From positions 87,296,001 to 87,360,000 of the forward strand of contig NC_043003.1 of the NCBI RefSeq assembly GCF_006345805.1: DNA of 64,000 nt, given 5' to 3'. The position numbers and the translations under genes were made by a program. The notes under the pieces are model-generated. The model saw only the letters and a program-made list of their open reading frames with translations. It had not been told where the DNA came from and did not search any database. The stretch is from Octopus sinensis (Eukaryota). This document shows positions 11,928-60,577 of this stretch, piece after piece. Within the stretch, counting starts at the first letter, position 1, and each line of letters begins with the position of its first letter.

Positions 11928-11934
11928 ATGTGTG
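11928..11934 (+). CDS. GFPT: GFAT coding exon 1 (ATG TGT G; Met-Cys1 catalytic nucleophile)
   Basis: ATGTGTG|GTAAGT with a consensus donor; joins in phase 1 to exon 2 to give MCGIFAYLN, the Ntn-glutaminase N-terminus. Confidence 0.9.
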
Positions 11935-28991: not shown

Positions 28992-29128
28992 AGCAGTGGC
29001 TGTGTGGTAAGTAGCTTGCTTACGAACTACTTGGTTCCGGGTTCAGTCCCACTGCGTGGCACCTTGGGCAAGTGTCTTCTACTATAGCCTTGTGAGTGGA
29101 TTTGGTTGACGGAAACTGAAAGAAGCCC

Positions 29129-29180
<52 letters not shown>

Positions 29181-29361
29181 GTTTGTGTGTCTGTGTTTGT
29201 CCCCCCAACATCACTTGACAACCAATGCTGGTGTGCTTACGTCCTCATAACTTAGCGGTTCGGCAAAACAGACCAATAGAATAAGTCCTGGGGTCGATTT
29301 GCTCGACTAAAGGTGGTGCTCCAGCATGGCCACAGTCAAATGACTGAAACAAGTAAAAGAA
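28992..29361 (+). mobile_element. SINE family A
   Basis: Same head, body and tail. Confidence 0.85.
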
Positions 29362-29465
29362 TATATATAAAGTTCTTAACATATGGTCAGTTTTATATAT
29401 TTATATAAATTGCCCTGTCATCATATATTCACATATATTTTTATGGGTATATTGGCACATATCAG

Positions 29466-29509
<44 letters not shown>

Positions 29510-29515
29510 CACTCC

Positions 29516-29756
29516 TTCATTTTATTAAACATTGTAAGTCTTATGAGTTTAAAAATGTTGAGCAATCTTCAGCCATTCATAGAAGTCTTCCATCAAACGG
29601 ACAACACATATACTTATTTCCAGTTCATTTGGAAACGAAAAGGGAATAAGTATATGTATATGTATTGTCCATTTGATGGAAGACTTCTATAAATGGCTGA
29701 AGATTGCTCAACATTTTAAAACTGATATAATACTTACAATGTTTAATAAAATGAAG
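29516..29756. repeat. Fold-back inverted repeat (~100-bp arms)
   Basis: 29516-29618 is the reverse complement of 29645-29756 with few mismatches. Confidence 0.85.
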
Positions 29757-29954
29757 TAGCATGAAACGATCGTACCAAATTACCGAAGGTATACTTGTTG
29801 CTTATTTTGATTATAATCACCCCATGGATTTATATGGATAATATCATACAAAATTCTGGTGCCTCTGACTTAAGTACCATATTCATTTGAATCTAAATTT
29901 TGCTGAACTTATATATATATATATATATATATAGATATATATATATATGTGTGT

Positions 29955-30245
29955 GGAGGCGCAATGGCCCAGTGGTTAGGGCAGTGGAATCGCGGTTGTA
30001 GGATCATGGTTTCGATACCCAGACCGGGCGTTGTTTAGTGAGTGAAAACACCTAAAGCTCCACAAGGCTCCGGCAGGGTGGGGTGGTGATCCCTGCTGTA
30101 CTCTTTCGCCACAACTTTCTCTCACTCTTTCTTCTGTTGGTCTGCACGCTTAGCCAGCGGGGTGGCATCATTTGAAGGCTAAAACAATGCGAAGCGCATT
30201 GTGACCAGTGATGTGTAGCAACATCTGATAACCTGGTCGGTTACG

Positions 30246-32480: not shown

Positions 32481-33734
32481 ATATTTTATCATATTTTATT
32501 CTCTGATACCACTTATCCTTCTCAGTACCTGGGTCCATTTCAGTTGATAACCATCCTTCATTCTTAATACTGTCCCCCTTCTTCATCCACATTTTACATT
32601 GACCACCCCTCCATACCACCACATCTCACTTTCTCCATCCCATGCACCTCTTACACATCTCCTGCACTACAGCTGCTTCTTCTTTCACACTCTTTGCAAC
32701 TTATCCAACCAGGTCATCTCGTTCTTTTATCCTTTCCCTGTTTACTGTATCATTATTACTATTCTGCTGCTCTCCACCACTTTCTGAACTGTCAGTCATC
32801 TTTGCTGCCCTCATTGATCACACCCATTCCTTGTCCACCATTCACTACATCCACCCCTCCACTATACCCAACCTCTAGTCATTACGTAATATTCTCTACC
32901 TTCTCTATAATATAGATCAGTGGTTTTCAACAAGGGTTCCGCCAGTACAGTCCAGGGATTCTGCAAGAAGTTACAAAACTGCTAAAATCGGCAGTAATTT
33001 TTAATTCTCCTGTGCAGATATGTGTGCATAAGACTATTAAATTATTGCACAGGGGTTCCTCGAGCCAGTGGAATGTTTCCTTGGGGTTCCACTCCAGCAA
33101 AAAGTTTGAAAAGCACTGATATAGATTGATCACTCTCTCAGCTTTTGTTCTTCATTCTTTATATTCACTGCTTCACCCATTCTCATTTCTCTAACTTTAT
33201 ATCACTCGTCCTTTACATTCCTGCAACTTTTACCATATTCCCTGTTCTACTGTCCCTACTCACTTCTTACCTTGTACTTTGAGGATCCACTTTAACACTT
33301 CATCATCACTATTTTATCTCCAGGCATAGGCATAAGTGTGGAAGAGAAGTTCACTTACCAGCCACATAGTTTCAGGTTTCAGGTTCAGTCCCACTGTGTG
33401 GTACCTTGGGTAAGTGTGTTCTACTAAAGCCCCAGGCGAAATAAATCCTTGAGTGTATTTGGTAGACAGAAACTGGAAGAAACCTGTTTGTGTGTGTGTA
33501 TTAGTGTCTTCTTGTATTGATGTCATATGATAGTTGTAAATGAGTGTCACTGTCGTACAAATAGTGTCCTTTGTATTCAATCTTCCATAAAAACATGTCT
33601 GACCATGGAGAAATATTATTTTCCTTGGGAACAAGTAAAAGTTCTTCACGGGAAGAGCATCTGGCTGTAGAAAAATCTGCATCTGTCTGACACTTCCAGT
33701 CATGGAAAAGTGGACATTAAAATGATCATCACAT

Positions 33735-33747
33735 ATATGTATGTATG

Positions 33748-33790
<43 letters not shown>

Positions 33791-33995
33791 ATATATATGT
33801 ATGTGTATATATATATGTATGTGTATATATATGTATGTGTATATATATGTATGTATGTGTATATATGTATGTATGTGTATATATATGTATGTGTATATAT
33901 ATGTATGTGTATATATATGTATGTATGTGTATATATGTATGTATGTGTATATATATGTATGTGTATATATATCTGTGTGGATGATGATGATGATA
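33735..33995. repeat. Compound (AT)n/(ATGT)n microsatellite ending in (GAT)n, directly before exon 4
   Basis: Direct reading. Confidence 0.95.
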
Positions 33996-34015
33996 TATAA
34001 AATTTTTTTTTTCAG

Positions 34016-36237: not shown

Positions 36238-36612
36238 ATAATAATAATAATAATGAAATTATTGTATACAGTACTCAAGTGCACCACAACTTGTCAGAAA
36301 GTGCATATAAAGTACATGCAGTAATGTACAAATGTCTGGAAAGCGAACAATGTATGAGTCAGATACATGCTTGTGTGTGTATGGAGGGGAGAAAATCAGG
36401 TGTAGTGTTGGCGAATCTCAGAAAGCATGGAAGTTTTGAAGGATGCAGTGCTCCGACAACTAACAACTGATGCCGGCAGTTTGTTCCATGCTTCAGCAAC
36501 TCTCAGCGTGAAAAAATGTTTCCTAAAGTCATGGGAGCTGTGCTGCTTTCTGACTTTGTAAATATGTCCACGGGTGTTAGACGGGTGGAGTTTGAAAAGG
36601 TGCTCAGAGTTT
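36238..36612 (-). mobile_element. CR1-type LINE 3' end
   Basis: ORF 36396..36635(-) SEHLFKLHPSNTRGH...RVAEAWNKLP. Confidence 0.85.
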
Positions 36613-36764
36613 TCCACATTTACATTCGTAATCAATCAAGCAATTAAAAAGGACAATTATTTTCCTTTGTGATCTAAATATTTGTTCATATTAATTGTTC
36701 ATATGTTGGTTTGACTTATCAAACACAAATACTATCTTCTGTTATTTTGTCACATTATTTGCAG

Positions 36765-36844
36765 ACGTGGAAGTCCTTTGCTGATAGGAATCAAAAGTAA
36801 CTCTAAGTTAACAACAGACAATATTCCTGTTTTGTATAGCAAAG
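36765..36844 (+). CDS. GFPT: GFAT exon 8
   Basis: tgcag|...|gttagt; [26 protein letters not shown] (PKA-site motif RRGS spans the exon 7/8 junction). Confidence 0.96.
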
Positions 36845-38570
36845 GTTAGTTACATCAGCTAAATAAGAACTTTGTTTGATGTTTTGTTTATTTCCATTTT
36901 TAAAAATTTTCAAAGCATGTTTTAGCATGTAGATCTTTTCGGTTAAGTGTTGCATTTCAGAACGTGTGATGTTGTATGTATGATTTCTTTTCCCTTTTTG
37001 CTGTGTAACATTTTTATTTAATACAAGGGCTTATAAGCTCACAATTTATTTTTTACCACTTATCAGGATTACATAACATTTTCTTTTTTAACCTTCTTTG
37101 TAAATAATACTTTAGAGAGAGTGGGCTTTGAATTGTACATGATACAGGATATCAGTGATAAAACAAACAGCCTATTATGGATTAAAGGAGATTTTCCATT
37201 CATAAAAGAAACAGTCCTTTAACAAGGAATGAAGTAGATTCAAAATTTCCTTTGATAGTTAAGATAGCAGTCATTTTTATTTGATTTCAATACATTCCCC
37301 TATCCATTTTCTTAAAATAGTATCTTTGTCATAGTCATGATGCTCCGCTTTAGTTAGAATTAAAAGACCTTGTTCAGTGAAATGAATTATTATTGAATTA
37401 AATTTGACACAAAATCACTGGATCTTAGACTCAATTTTTGTTTCTATCTACATTAATAAAATATGATAGTTTTCAAAAAAAAAAAAAATCCTGCATAAGT
37501 AAATGTTTTGCAAAACTATATTTACCAAAACTAAAATTTTGATTTCTTTTTATCCTTCTTTTACCTTATACAACTCATCAATGTTTAGTGAGCACCCTTC
37601 AAAATAAATGCACCAGTTACTGTCTTCAAAGAAAAATATTTTAAAGACCATAGTTAGGGTAACCCATTAGGTCAATTAGAATATTTTACTATTTGCGAAA
37701 TTTCTGAAATACTAAATCTGTGTGGTACAATTACTGTGAGGTTATGGTGTTGTGCTACTTGCCATATGATCATAAACCCAACTCTCTGAGAGCAATTTCA
37801 ATGTGATATCCTCATCTCTTCAGCAAAGTATATAATTTAAATGGAGATTATGGAGTGGCTCATTATTTCTAACTGCAGTAGTAAGCTCTACCGGTCAAAT
37901 TTTAATAATCCTCTTCATTTGGCCTATTACACACTTTTGTTACCACTATATCACTAATTCCATATCATCATCTAAGTATATTGGGTGTGAATCTTCCAGC
38001 TTTGATAAATACTAAATTGTCATGTTTAATGCACCTTTGCAGTTTAATATAGTACTTATTACTTGTATTTTAAAAAATTATTAAAGCATGAAGTCCTTTC
38101 TCTTTTTTTCTCTCTTCCTTAAAGCTGCACTTTCATGTCCATACTTAATGGTATTGATGACAATATAGCATGAACCTGCTTTTTTGTGTGTATGTGTGTC
38201 TCTCTCTTTCTCTCCCTCTCTTTCTCTCTCTCCCTCTCTCTCTCAAGTTATACTGTATCTAGACAATCTATGAGAAGATATCTAAAATAGATATAACCAC
38301 TAGAGTTCAATGAGACTAATGGTTGTCCACTTCAATTAGAAACAATTTGGTGAAAAGCAAAACAGTGCAAAGTATACTGGTGCACCCCCTTCCACAACGC
38401 ATCAATATACCTCACAAAGTTTTGCTTTTGTATTAACCAAAAGTTTTGATCCTACTTGGGAAGAAAAACTTTATTCAAAATAAGTTGCATAGCTCCTGCT
38501 CCTCACACTATGCCTACTTTAGAAATATAAGCAAATAATTTATCTACACTTTGTTTTTACCTTGTTTTAG

Positions 38571-38597
38571 GAAGTGCTAAAGACTCAGATTCTCCAG
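38571..38597 (+). CDS. GFPT: Candidate alternative 27-nt microexon of GFAT (GSAKDSDSP)
   Basis: Pyrimidine tract ttgtttttaccttgttttag, 27 nt open in phase 1/1, CAG|GTACAC donor (weak), TGCATG at 38671; no transcript evidence available. Confidence 0.55.
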
Positions 38598-38854
38598 GTA
38601 CACCATGTTTTGTTGTTTTTTTTTTTTCTTTTGTTTTCCACTTACTCTTGTGTTCAGCTGCTTTCCACACTGCATGACCTTTTTGCAGGCTTCATTCCTT
38701 AGCAGCAGTCACCCCACGTTTTGGAGGGAAAGGAAATGTGGGTGGGTAAGGAAGAGCCATCTCATTAATAAATTTTTAACAATTATGGCTTTTTCTTTGC
38801 AAAACCTGTTCATCTCTCCCTTTTTTCCCCCTGCCTAATTATAGCATCTCAGTT

Positions 38855-38885
<31 letters not shown>

Positions 38886-39802
38886 GTTTACTTTTTTCAT
38901 AACTTGACCATACAATACACATCAGATGAGTTAATACTGCTTGTTGCCTCATGTTCGAAATTCAAATAACATCAATATTCTTTTGTCTTAAGAAACTGGA
39001 AGTCATGGCAACTCACTCTACAACTTGTCCCTTTTTTTTTTTTTTTTTACCAAAAATAACACAAAAAAAAAAATTTTTTTAATTGCCTTGGGTCTATGTC
39101 CCCACCAAAAGTGACTTAATTTTCAGGAATCTTGATTTTATATTCCAAATAAATTTTAAATTGGATGAAGATGCTCTTGAGTCGATGCAAGACTGCAACC
39201 TTTGCAATTTTGCATTCCTTTCTCTGCAACTATTAAAATTTTTTTTTTTTTTTTCTGCTTTCATTAAAATTGGCTTGAGTCGATAAAAAAAAAATGTTTT
39301 CCCTTTTTGCCCTAACCAACTGAATAAACATTTTTCCTTTATTTATTTATTTATTTTTTTTATATAATCATGAATTCAAAACATTGCAGTGTTTAAACGT
39401 CTTACCTGATAATCAAATGGTTTTTCTTTTTAATTGATATTTTGAAACCAAATACTAATTGTGTTTTTCCAAAATACTAATAAACCTTCCCTCCCTGGGT
39501 ATTAGTTTGCTTAAGAATCCTGTATATAATTGTACTACATCAGTAAGCAAAATTACTTGGAATTGTTTCAAATGGCATGAAGAGGGTAATATCATGGTAA
39601 TTTTGGCATTATTCTTATTTCTGGCTCTTAGTGTTCTTGATTTTGTAATCCTCCCATGGTCAATATTGCTTTTCTCCCTTTGTGGTCAATGAAGTACCAA
39701 ACGAGTGCTACTGGTGGTGGGAGGGGGGATTTAAATTAACTATTCTCATCTCAAAAATACTGGCCTTGTGCCTAAATTAGAAATGATTTGACAGAATTGT
39801 TA

Positions 39803-39974
39803 GGTGCAGGCGTGGCTGTGTGGTAAGAAGCTTGCCTCCCAACCACATGGTTCCAAGTTCAGTCCCACTGTGTGGTATCTTGAGCAAGTCTTCTATAGCC
39901 TCAGGCTGACCAAAACCTTGAATGCTTTTAGTTGACAGAAACTGAAAGAAGCCCGTTGTATGTGTGTGTGTGTG

Positions 39975-40038
<64 letters not shown>

Positions 40039-40260
40039 CATACATACATACATACATATAGATGATGATATATATATATATATGTGTGCGTGTGTGTCTT
40101 TGTGTCTGTGTTTGTCTCCCCCACCACCGCTTAATAGAATAAGTACCAGGATTTAAAAAAAAATATGTTCTGATGTGGATTTGTTTGATTAAAACCCTTC
40201 AAAGCAGTGCCCCAGCATGGCTACAGTCAAATGACAGAAACAAGTAAAAGATAAAGGATA
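39803..40260 (+). mobile_element. SINE family A
   Basis: Same head, body and tail with an expanded internal microsatellite. Confidence 0.8.
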
Positions 40261-43200
40261 AAATGATGCTGGATGAAATACTTAGTGATATTTCATCTCT
40301 CGCTATGTTCAAATTCTGCTGCTGTCAACTTTGCCTCCCATTCTCTCAGGGTTGATGAAATAATTACCAGTCAAGTGCTGGGTTCAGTGTAATTGACTAG
40401 TCCTCCCCTCCAATATCAGGTCTTGTGCCTATAGTAGAAAGGATTATTATTATTATTAAATAGCAATGGTGAAGATGGATTATTGTATCCAGTTTTGCCC
40501 TGTAGTGTCTGAATTAACAATTTGCTATTGATGACTTACTTTTCCTATCTTTAAAATCAATAAAATGGTAATAATATATTAACCTTCAGCCTGTTAACTG
40601 TAACTCCTGTTTCAACAAACAATGTTTTGCTTAAGGAAGTAGTGCCATTGAAAGAATTAAGTTTGTGACATTTAAGTACCAAATCAAATACTTTCTAGCC
40701 ATAGTTTTGCACCCTTCAAATTACTCCAGGAATGAGTAAAATGGATATAACTAATGTACTGATATTAAAACAACCTATGGTGTCCTTTTAAAAGGTGGAC
40801 TTTGTGCTTATGTAAAATATTAAAATTAGCAAATTAAACAAATAATGATATAATAATAAAGATTTTCTATTCTTAGTAGTAAGCAAATACATGATATTAA
40901 TTTCTCTTCTAATCAACTTTGCCTTTTATATTTAAATATATTAATAGGTGTGTATATGTATGTGTGTATTATTATTATTATATGTAAATATTGATATCAT
41001 AAGAATTTAGAAACTTTGAGAAAGTGTGAAATATTTTTTTTAAAATCTTTTTGAAACGATGGAATTTGAAATAGTAAAGCTTTAGATGATAATGTACAGA
41101 TATTGAGTTTCACAGTTTATAAAAGTCATCACTTCATCAAGAAGGCTTTTATTTGTTCTTTCCTTGTCTTGCAAAATTACTTGGCAACCTTACTCTTGCT
41201 GATATCACAAACGATACTCCCACTACACACTGTAAAGTAATCTGCATTAAAACCCAAAGAATCCATGCCAGAGCCAACACTGGAGCTCAATGCAGCCCGC
41301 TAGCTTGCTGGATCCTATCAAACCATCCAACCCATCAAGGCATGGAAGATAGACTGTTGGATGGTTGGTGTTAGGAAGGGCATCCAGCTGTAAACACCAT
41401 GCCAGAACACACTGAAGCCTGGTGCAGTCTTCTTCCTAGCCAGCTCCTGTCAAATCGTCCAACCCATATCAGCATGGAAAGCAGATGTCATGATGATATA
41501 TATATATATATCATCATCATTGACTGCACATATTCTATATGTGTTTTGCTGGTGTGGTGTGGATGACTCTCTCGAAGTGTTGGATGGGTGTTAAAACACC
41601 TAAAATCGTAGACAGACAAGACAATTCATCTTTTGACTATATTTCCCATCATTTTAGTGTTTTTGAACAACATTTATTAAAATAGAAGTATTCAGAACAC
41701 AGAATAACAAAAAAAATTCGCAAACATATTTATATTCCCATATAACAGTTGAGAACATCATTACTGTACTACACATACGCAGAAGTGTTTGTTTGACTAG
41801 GTGCTGCTGGCTTAATTACGCATGACTCAAGTTAGAGAAGGAGTGCGTATTATACACAAGGTTTAGGTTTTTCAGAGGCACAGCCCCCTAAAAATCCCCT
41901 GCGGACTATACGTGAAGATTTACGGTACTATTGAGTAATGAAGCTTATTGGGCAACTCTGAGCTTTGTTAGCCTTGCAGATCTGAATTTACTGTCATGTG
42001 AATGCAATTGTAAAGAGAGGTTTCTGATTTAGCTGATTTGACATCTAACAATAACTTGAGCCTTTTGTGGTTCTCCTGTATTCCAAATGATTATGAATTT
42101 GTATCACCAATATAAGTGACCCGAGTATAATATCCAAGCCAATGAAAGAGCCTCTATGTCAGGCATGGGCAACATTTTTCAAGAAGTGGGCCACATGAGA
42201 CATAGTTCATCATCAGGTGGAGCTGCACTCCTAAAAAGATTTGAAGGTAATTTTTCATTAAGCATGCCATTCAGAAAGTACTACAGGCCACAGTTTGCTC
42301 GTGTTTGTCCTCTGGTTGTTCAATCTGCTAGAAAATAGCAGCTAAATTCCTTCACATCACACCACTACTTTCTTAAGGATGGAAGGGACACATTTCTTGA
42401 TAGTGCTCTAGATATCTCTTACAAAGCTGGGTTGGTCACTGCTGGAATTGGTTATGTCTGCTCAATCACTGCTGACCTGAGGCTAAGCAGCAACGATTCC
42501 TGTATCATAATATTGATTGTTCATATTGAGGGATGCATGGCAACGTCAATTTTACTGGGATTTATGACTTCTTTTGAGGGCTTTCAGATATTTCTGCACT
42601 TCATGGTTTCAGTAAATATGTCTAAAATGGGTGAAGCAACCAGTCTTGCTAATATTACTTGAATTTCTGTTCTATATTCTTTCTTATAAGCAGATTTTAT
42701 ATCAGCATCGGTTTATTTCATTTTCAAATGTTATTCTATCTGGCTTTAAACTTTCTTTGCTTATTTTTCAATTCTTTTTTGTTTTTTTTTAATTTATTCT
42801 CTCATGTTTTCAGTGTAAACTGATTTACCATATTTAATGACAAAATACCGATAATAATCTTCAGTTTTTGTGATGATATATTCCCTTCCTCAAATACTTT
42901 AAATGTAACTTTATACGAGTTGTCATTCCTGGCCTTAAGGAGTAGCAAATTTTCACCACATACTTTAAAAATTCATGCACATTTATAATTATTATCACTA
43001 TCATAGTTAATAATACAAATCATTTTTTCATTGTCTAGTTATTCTTGTATCAGGAAACAAGAAAATATTACTTTAGCAAAAAAAAATTGCTTCTTTGTTT
43101 ATATTTTGAATCAATAAAAAAATGTTTGAGATTTTTCTGCCTCTCATTGGAATGGGGCTTCAGCTTTAACACTAATGCTTTTTTGTTGAACTAACAAGTT

Positions 43201-43327
43201 ATGTATACAATATTTACAAACTATAAAAAAAAATTTATTTGTTTTAAGAAAAAGGATTCCATCCCTTTTTAAGTGGGCGGGGCTTATACTAACCCTTTTT
43301 CCATTTTTTTTTTAAATAAAAAAACAA

Positions 43328-43844: not shown

Positions 43845-43953
43845 ACCACAGAGGTTATGTACAACCAGTCCAAAGACCTACTGATGGTACGACTGAATTT
43901 CACCCTTCTGGACCAAATACTGAAGTTGAATATTTTTTTGCTTCTGATGCCAG
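43845..43953 (+). CDS. GFPT: GFAT exon 9
   Basis: ttcag|...|gtaaat; DHRGYVQPVQRPTDGTTEFHPSGPNTEVEYFFASDAS. Confidence 0.96.
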
Positions 43954-46807: not shown

Positions 46808-47052
46808 GCCTTGTGAGTGGATTTGGTGGATGGAAACTGAAAGGAACCTGTCGTGTGTGTGTGTGTGTATATATATATTGTATATTATATTTATTTTTTG
46901 TTTTTTATGTTTTGGTTTATGTCTATCACTGTTTGAGTTGCCTAATAGTGGTTTTATCTCTAATTTATTTATATATTTATACTGTCAAATTTGATTTACT
47001 CCTAAATCTAATTTTTCCCTGTACGTTTGGATATACTTCCTAATATTATTAT

Positions 47053-47086
<34 letters not shown>

Positions 47087-47441
47087 TGCATGACAGGTTT
47101 CTTTCAATTTCCATCCACCAAATCCACTCACAAGGCTTTGGTCAACCCAAGACTATAGTAGAAAACATTTTCCCATGGTACCATGTAGTGGGTTTGAATC
47201 CTGTGTGTGTGAATGTCTCTTTGTCTTGACATGATGTAATAGTTGTAAATGATTGTCACCATCATGCAAACGGTGTCCTTCATTTCTCAGCCTTCTGTGA
47301 AAACATGACTATTCATGGAAAAATATTACCTTCCTTAGAAATGTCTTGGAGTTGGCAACAGAAAACCCGCTACAACAAATTCTATCTGATCTATGCGAGC
47401 ATGGAAAAAGTTGCTGTTAAAACAACAATGATGTTTTAACA

Positions 47442-47603
47442 GCGCAGGAGTGGCTGTGTGGTAAGTAGCTTGCTAACCAACCACATGGTTCCGGGTTCAG
47501 TCCCACTGCGTGGCATCTTGGACAAGTGTCTTCTGCTATAGCCCCGGACCGACCAATACCTTGTGAGTGGATTTGGTAGACGGAAACTGAAAGAAGCCTG
47601 TCG

Positions 47604-47701
<98 letters not shown>

Positions 47702-47913
47702 TTATGTATCTGTGTTTGTCCCCCTAGCATTGCTTGACAACCGATGCTGGTGTGTTTACGTCCCCGTCACTTAGCGGTTCGGCAAAAGAGACCGATAGAA
47801 TAAGTACTGGGCTTACAAAGAATAAGTCCTGGGGTCGATTTGCTTGACTAAAGGCAGTGCTCCAGCATGGCTGCAGTCAAATGACTGAAACAAGTAAAAG
47901 AGAGAGTAAAGAG
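47442..47913 (+). mobile_element. SINE family A (young), abutting the exon 10 acceptor
   Basis: Complete head to tail; ends ~30 nt before the AG at 47945. Confidence 0.87.
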
Positions 47914-47945
47914 ATGACATTTTTTCTTTGTTTTTTTGTCTACAG

Positions 47946-48109
47946 TGCCATAATTGAACACACCAACAAAGTGATCTTCCTTGAGGATGATGATGTAGCT
48001 GCAGTTGCTAATGGTTGTTTAAGTATTCATCGTATCAAGCGCAACTTGGATGACAACAAGGTCCGGGAAGTGATAACTTTGAAGATGGAAATTCAAGAAA
48101 TCATGAAAG
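47946..48109 (+). CDS. GFPT: GFAT exon 10
   Basis: tacag|...|gtttgt; [55 protein letters not shown]. Confidence 0.97.
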
Positions 48110-60415: not shown

Positions 60416-60577
60416 GGTGATTTGATTGTTATTTGCAACAGTGGTGACACAGAAACCCAAAGTCATGTGAAGAGGTTCATTGCTGTACCACATACAATCG
60501 ACTGCTTACAAGGAATTCTTACTATAATTCCTTTACAGCTTCTTTCCTTACATATCGCTGAAAAACGTAACTGTGAT
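60416..60577 (+). CDS. GFPT: GFAT exon 18 (penultimate; terminal exon not found in window)
   Basis: tctag|...|gtaagc; GDLIVICNSGDTETQSHVKRFIAVPHTIDCLQGILTIIPLQLLSLHIAEKRNCD. Confidence 0.95.

Follow-up and report, generated by a model that had tools for sequence, protein, structure and literature searches.

A 27-nt alternative microexon of the Octopus sinensis GFAT gene at the position of the mammalian muscle GFPT1 exon

The 27 nt at positions 38571-38597 of the window (the whole stretch of 64,000 nt of Octopus sinensis DNA analysed here: assembly GCF_006345805.1, contig NC_043003.1, 87,296,001-87,360,000, forward strand) are almost certainly a real, alternative and conserved exon of the gene for glutamine:fructose-6-phosphate amidotransferase (abbreviated GFAT). 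With high confidence, the data as a whole are best explained by an old GFAT cassette microexon that lengthens a loop of the enzyme and whose inclusion is proposed to depend on an activator. The exon had been called correctly from the raw sequence without tools; it is already annotated in RefSeq and hence is not a new discovery. The O. sinensis RefSeq isoforms X1 and X2 are identical in sequence to the window, and these entries are computational models that carry no described function, tissue pattern or publication.

Gene model and splice signals

The GFAT gene, named GFAT2 in O. sinensis RefSeq, is on the + strand, and 18 coding exons with canonical splice sites were located between 11928 and 60577 by tblastn with a GFAT protein, the splice sites then being curated by hand. 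The last coding exon (..VDCPRNLAKSVTVE) was absent from the window and sits past its 3' end. Intron 8, which holds the microexon, is exactly 7000 nt long (exon 8 ends at 36844 and exon 9 starts at 43845), in agreement with the 7 kb given in an earlier reading made without database searches (the sequence-only reading). The features around the microexon are collected in Table 1. At the other end of the gene, the coding part of exon 1 spans only 7 nt (11928-11934, ATGTGTG/gtaagt), which encode the initiator Met and the catalytic Cys2; an 8.4-kb intron follows.

Variation was also observed at the 3' end of the gene. An alternative end, ..NCD-TDQPRHLLKSYTH in place of ..VDCPRNLAKSVTVE, is present in octopod isoforms (O. 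sinensis X2, O. bimaculoides X2, Argonauta X2 and one O. vulgaris model), and its reading is sited beyond the 3' end of the window, at 78618-78656 of the Sepia pharaonis contig L003, 57081-57119 of the Argonauta contig L001 and 65247-65285 of the O. bimaculoides contig L027. A transcript from Sepia has the canonical tail on an exon of 63 nt, placed before the exon with the alternative reading; therefore, the isoform looks like the result of skipping the exon that encodes the conserved C-terminal tail of GFAT. In addition, the penultimate coding exon of Sepia pharaonis exists as two tandem copies (L003 67520-67687 and 70162-70329) of mutually exclusive use, and the Sepia proteins P0131 and P0134 differ only within residues 613-664. 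The penultimate exon is single-copy in the window (60416-60577), in O. bimaculoides and in Argonauta, the copy present being the one less like the vertebrate sequence.

Table 1. Features of the O. sinensis GFAT gene around the intron 8 microexon, in window coordinates
Feature	Position	Strand	Details
Repeat-free zone	36612..39800	.	3189 nt; longest stretch of the window without a within-window repeat; 0% repeated vs 39% in the rest of the gene
GFAT coding exon 8	36765..36844	+	ends ..NIPVLYSK + 1 base (G), ..GTTTTGTATAGCAAAG; phase-1 donor AAG/gttagt; octopus transcript L002 aligns
Upstream conserved intronic block	38493..38549	+	50/57 bases identical in Argonauta
Polypyrimidine tract + AG acceptor	38551..38570	+	ttgtttttaccttgttttag; 15/18 pyrimidines at -20..-3; PWM score 8.7
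27-nt cassette microexon	38571..38597	+	GAAGTGCTAAAGACTCAGATTCTCCAG; phase 1/1; encodes (G)SAKDSDSP(D)
Weak 5' splice site	38598..38603	+	GTACAC, without +5 G; PWM score 3.8; same GTACAC in Argonauta
U-rich tract	~38607..38638	+	just 3' of the weak donor; Argonauta also U-rich
Conserved downstream intronic element	38640..38712	+	TGTGT 38649-38653, TGCATG 38671-38676, TTTTTGCAGGCTT; 63/73 bases identical in Argonauta, core aligned in Sepia
GFAT coding exon 9	43845..43953	+	start ACCACAGAGGT, (D)HRGYVQPVQRPTDGTTEFHPSGPNTEVEYFFASDA.. / (D)HRGYVQPVQ.., giving D-H-R-G; octopus transcript L002 aligns

Inclusion of the microexon adds GSAKDSDSP between YSK and DHRG. The pyrimidine tract, the AG and the 27 nt open in phase 1/1 with this insert, as described in the sequence-only reading, were all found in place, and so was the CAG/GTACAC donor that it had called weak. 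When splice sites were scored with a PWM built from the GFAT gene's own sites, this donor fell below all 18 constitutive donors (3.8 vs 6.4-11.0), and the acceptor was slightly under the constitutive range (8.7 vs 9.3-19.0). The 27 nt thus present the features of a frame-preserving microexon: AG/GT flanks, a length of no more than about 30 nt that is a multiple of 3, and a frame open in phase with the host.

Signals of this kind can also arise by chance. The probability that 10 codons stay open in intron 8 is about 0.55, and open frame-preserving AG..GT candidates of 9-60 nt amount to 222 in this intron and 1545 across all introns. The microexon was the top-scoring candidate of intron 8 and the 6th of the 1545 by summed PWM score, and no other candidate equalled both of its splice-site scores. 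Therefore, given the likely open frame and the many candidates, the sequence signals alone are suggestive of an exon, and the external evidence is decisive.

Transcripts and orthologues

A full-length protein query followed by cluster look-up gave the set of annotated isoforms. The window model with the microexon matched O. sinensis XP_029638482.1 (isoform X1, 687 aa) at 673/673 residues. The GSAKDSDSP insert is present in X1 and in X2 (XP_029638483.1, 686 aa), whereas X3 (XP_029638484.1) is without it. Similarly, the O. vulgaris model CAI9726016.1 carries GCAKDSDSP, and CAI9726014/15 are without insert. RefSeq X-models are computational predictions, and the microexon is also backed by an independent transcript, the Logan contig L002 from SRR3401912, an "octopus" metatranscriptome (PMC11662614). 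In this contig, exon 8 is followed by window positions 38569-38597 and then by exon 9, the match to the microexon occupying contig bases 740-768. The contig derives from a related species (protein 96% identical, exon DNA 86-98% identical to the window), and its insert peptide reads GSGKDSNSP. The proposal of a real, alternatively spliced GFAT exon is thus borne out by annotated isoforms that include or skip it and by a spliced octopus transcript.

A shorter query of 72 aa, made of exon 8, microexon and exon 9, returned as its sole match an unrelated fragment, P0001. This 76-aa eukaryotic sequence, from a 609-kb ENA contig, holds the RRGSPLL..YFFASDAR segment within one ORF, with a different Asn/Glu-rich loop (SGPGEENNAENENGLANGWSNLKREGSS) and no intron at the splice hot spot. 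Among the top-ranked results of a search for microexons and GFAT genes in the literature library used, no paper tied the two together, and a paper on Drosophila Gfat1/Gfat2 contained no discussion of splice isoforms.

The conservation in related cephalopods that the sequence-only reading had named as a check was found, with open orthologues and their splice sites in both Argonauta (27 nt) and Sepia (24 nt). When intron 8 was compared with the Argonauta genome (L001), window positions 38485-38706 formed its strongest syntenic island (E = 8e-41). The Argonauta orthologue, GCCGTGGTAAAGATACACTTTCTAAAG, is open in the same phase, encodes GRGKDTLSK and shares with octopus the AG and the GTACAC donor; 18 of its 27 bases are identical to the octopus microexon, and the flanks are at least as conserved. 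In Sepia pharaonis (L003), the orthologue GTCATAAAGATCCCCCTTTGGAAG (GHKDPPLE) is placed between exons 8 and 9 by the transcript L004. Among full-length Sepia contigs, 23 include the exon (17 of P0132 and 6 of P0133) and 18 skip it (P0131).

Outside the cephalopods, a 27-nt exon was found in the same intron of Lottia (L025 18904-18930, GKKDISLHE) and of Pecten (L026 56381-56407, GFKDNSTTE). The orthologues in Argonauta, Sepia, Lottia and Pecten therefore date the microexon back to the common ancestor of these mollusc classes or earlier. The O. bimaculoides RefSeq isoforms X1 and X2 are without insert, probably as a consequence of an assembly gap, since in GCA_001194135.2 a run of 2138 N (L027 28231-30368) covers the position orthologous to the microexon (window ~38245-40047). 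Across the mollusc orthologues, the conserved peptide core is limited to G..KD, and the C-terminal half is lineage-specific. For this reason, the earlier suggestion of a Ser/Asp-rich, phosphorylatable loop was judged weak: neither GRGKDTLSK of Argonauta nor GHKDPPLE of Sepia is Ser/Asp-rich.

These data bear directly on the possibility that the 27 nt lack a function, being a pseudo-exon formed by chance, a product of noisy splicing or an artefact of annotation. Such an origin would fit the unremarkable open frame and the five of 1545 candidates with an equal or better summed score, but it does not account for the presence of the exon in O. sinensis RefSeq isoforms, O. vulgaris models and a transcript contig of independent origin, nor for a frame kept in octopus, Argonauta, Sepia, Lottia and Pecten and inclusion in 23 full-length Sepia contigs. 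In our view, transcripts and comparison between species have in effect refuted it, with hardly any probability left to it.

Pecten maximus has two alternative microexons in this intron, one of 24 nt (AQHRLGPD, L026 50256-50279) besides the 27-nt GFKDNSTTE exon. In octopus, three further intron 8 islands (39158-39237, 39453-39515 and 43132-43215), syntenic and 72-81% identical in Argonauta, were searched for a second exon and gave no convincing frame-preserving candidate; they may therefore be regulatory. Two candidate exons within 43132-43215 were rejected on account of their poor acceptors and hydrophobic peptides.

Downstream elements and control of inclusion

The microexon lies in the repeat-free zone of Table 1, as defined by self-comparison of the window, which confirms the earlier remark that no SINE is recognisable from about 36650 to 39800. 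The most repeated segments of the window were 1-1000, 29001-30000, 33001-34000 and 47001-48000 (mean self-match depth 15-24); they presumably correspond to the SINE-like family noted in that reading.

The U-rich tracts and the TGCATG at 38671 that had been pointed out downstream of the exon are both present, and (U)GCAUG is conserved across cephalopods. The hexamer starts 74 nt past the microexon donor, within an element (TGTGTTSAGCWGCTT..GCATG..TTTTT..GCAGGCTT) that can be aligned in octopus, Argonauta and Sepia. Counted from the donor, GCATG was found at +75 in octopus, +91 in Argonauta, +48 in Sepia (as GGCATG) and +21/+119 in Lottia, which has two TGCATG copies within 120 nt, against a background of 0.04-0.11 per 100 nt. 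The exon therefore has the conserved proximal downstream (U)GCAUG by which RBFOX exons are recognised, although the motif is not singled out by conservation, because it lies within a generally conserved block. TGTGT is likewise conserved, at +52 in octopus, +68 in Argonauta and +24 in Sepia. As regards GCATG, Pecten departs from the other species: its copies are at -8 and, downstream, only at +259. In this species the motif thus falls in the acceptor region of the 27-nt exon, with none within 250 nt downstream, an arrangement usually tied to repression.

None of the five orthologous donors (gtacac, gtacac, gtagcc, gtaaat and gtatct) has a G at +5, which is present in 15 of the 18 constitutive donors of the window. 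Given that all the species compared have a weak 5' splice site here, inclusion probably requires an activator. Some mRNAs carry the microexon between exons 8 and 9 and others lack it, and its inclusion adds nine residues at a point that aligns with the start of a flexible loop. According to the mechanism that we propose, the activator would act on the downstream element (U-rich tract, UGUGU and (U)GCAUG), the leading candidate being recruitment of U1 snRNP by an RBFOX-type protein, as for human GFPT1 exon 9. Dependence on such an activator would make inclusion likely to vary with cell type. The longer loop could in turn tune catalytic parameters or feedback by UDP-GlcNAc, a step proposed by analogy only with GFPT1-L.

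Whether the exon is RBFOX-driven or tissue-regulated is an even call, and two other readings have to be weighed against it. In one, the exon is real and alternative but both forms are broadly co-expressed, without a sharp switch between tissues; weak sites would give intermediate inclusion everywhere, and the conserved flanks would merely keep the exon spliceable. Whole-larva runs of the same Sepia esculenta projects assemble either isoform (with the exon SRR25158135, without it SRR25158141/153/134/130; with it SRR23936174, without it SRR23936170), and therefore both isoforms are abundant in mixed tissue, the traceable runs being whole Sepia esculenta larvae or juveniles from exposure studies and an octopus metatranscriptome of unspecified tissue. 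However, the intronic flanks are conserved as much as the exon or more, and the weak donor and the GCAUG are conserved as well; regulated exons are usually marked by this combination. Constrained regulatory sequence is also suggested by the repeat-free zone, which spans about 3.2 kb. On balance, broad co-expression is the less likely reading.

Regulation by a factor other than RBFOX appears less probable still. Here the enhancer would be the U-rich tract (TIA1-like) or UGUGU (CELF/Bruno-like), with GCAUG as a passenger, and both the U-rich run directly 3' of the weak donor in octopus and Argonauta and the TGTGT kept in the three cephalopods would be in line with it. Against this, GCAUG is found at the aligned position in 3/3 cephalopods, Lottia has its two nearby TGCATG copies, and the mammalian exon at the same site depends on Rbfox experimentally (PMC10514471). 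The RBFOX-type activator thus stays the leading candidate within the proposed mechanism.

Age of the insertion and comparison with known systems

In the glutaminase domain of human GFAT1, residues 228-239 form a flexible, unmodelled loop (PMC7000685). The octopus insert aligns with the start of this loop, the point at which the muscle-specific exon 9 of mammals is inserted as well. At the protein level, the octopus insert sits between LYSK and DHRG, and in P0019 and P0021 ARTQIGSKFTRWGSQGER sits between LYRT and GKDKK; macaque GFPT1 entries differ from each other by the presence of ARTQIGSKFTRWGSQGER after LYRT. The sequence-only reading had placed the exon at the same protein position as the vertebrate muscle exon of GFPT1, and the alignment agrees. 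Sequence similarity, by which homology with exon 9 would be recognised, was not found between GSAKDSDSP and ARTQIGSKFTRWGSQGER, which are encoded by 27 and 54 nt, respectively.

Variation at this junction was also followed in RefSeq models and assembled transcripts of many protostomes. Isoforms differ exactly between ..YSK and DHRG in Haliotis, oysters, Mercenaria, Ruditapes, Mytilus, the brachiopod Lingula and many insects, as well as in several further transcript assemblies. Across bilaterians, the intron has hosted alternative exons either repeatedly or since ancient times. The sequence-only reading had offered convergence or an ancestral splice hot spot as the origin of the exon. A hot spot is favoured over a convergence specific to cephalopods, because homologous G-x-K-D microexons occur across molluscs (Argonauta, Sepia, Lottia and Pecten) and isoforms vary at the junction in bivalves, gastropods, a brachiopod and insects. 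The comparison gave no support to a homology with the vertebrate exon.

As regards the relation to mammals, independent origins of the mollusc microexon and GFPT1 exon 9, at an intron located within a permissive surface loop, are somewhat favoured. The dissimilar peptides and lengths fit such a convergence, as do the variation of the insert sequences between phyla and the report that conservation of exon 9 and of its cis-elements is confined to mammals (PMC10514471). Against it stand the same protein position and compatible phase, the weak donor and downstream UGCAUG found in both exons, and the fact that molluscs, a brachiopod, insects and mammals all have alternative inserts here. A bolder proposal is that the GFAT loop insertion is an ancient bilaterian switch of hexosamine feedback under RBFOX-type control. 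The mollusc G-x-K-D exons, the DAESQNP-type inserts of insects and mammalian exon 9 would then have descended from, or been repeatedly recruited at, one ancestral regulated site, with the same role in excitable or contractile tissues. We regard this as unlikely. If it were true, alternative GFAT loop insertion would not be a mammalian invention. Cassette exons that look regulated do occupy the same loop position in all mollusc genomes inspectable at this intron. The mollusc exons would in any case offer a cheap comparative handle on the effect of the loop insertion on GFAT regulation, and on a possible early metazoan origin of tissue-specific tuning of UDP-GlcNAc feedback.

The closest relatives of the octopus exon are the G-x-K-D GFAT microexons of other molluscs, which exist as RefSeq/GenBank models (in Haliotis, GFKDLTSTEG, and in Mercenaria, GTKDYNQNE, besides those of Sepia, Lottia and Pecten). 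They share with it the intron, the phase, a length of 24-30 nt, a start of the form G-x(1-2)-K-D/E and weak donors without +5 G. In contrast, the second alternative exon that several bivalves and gastropods have in the same intron was not found in octopus. The octopus exon resembles the neural microexons of the SRRM4/eMIC programme in being no longer than 27 nt, in preserving the frame and in lying in a surface loop. Those exons have a UGC near the polypyrimidine tract, within about 40 nt upstream of the 3' splice site, whereas in octopus no TGC was found at -57..-1 and the only one in the upstream 60 nt is at -60; an assignment to the SRRM4/eMIC type was rejected because a nearby upstream UGC is lacking.

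Human GFPT1 exon 9 is a muscle-specific exon of 54 bp with a weak 5' splice site, and its inclusion needs a UGCAUG in intron 9 and Rbfox1/2, together with SRSF1, for recruitment of U1 snRNP (PMC10514471). The resulting GFPT1-L, or GFAT1-L (Niimi 2001, DeHaven 2001, as cited in PMC10514471), has a ~2-fold higher Km and a ~5-fold lower Ki for UDP-GlcNAc. It is the only known mammalian splice variant and is described as a mammalian acquisition; in striated muscle it dampens the pathway, and neuromuscular-junction defects result when it is lost (PMC10514471). Muscle specificity, dependence on Rbfox/SRSF1/hnRNP H and a kinetic effect have been demonstrated for the mammalian exon only, and a GFPT1-L-like kinetic effect of the octopus microexon, suggested by analogy, is doubtful. 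A biochemical effect common to both inserts is a conjecture, because the octopus peptide is poorly conserved beyond G..KD and dissimilar to the 18 residues of the mammalian one. The octopus insert is half as long (9 aa, 27 nt) as that of GFPT1-L (18 aa, 54 nt), and yet the two exons have in common that they are frame-preserving cassettes placed after ..LY(R/S)(T/K), with a weak 5' splice site and a UGCAUG downstream.
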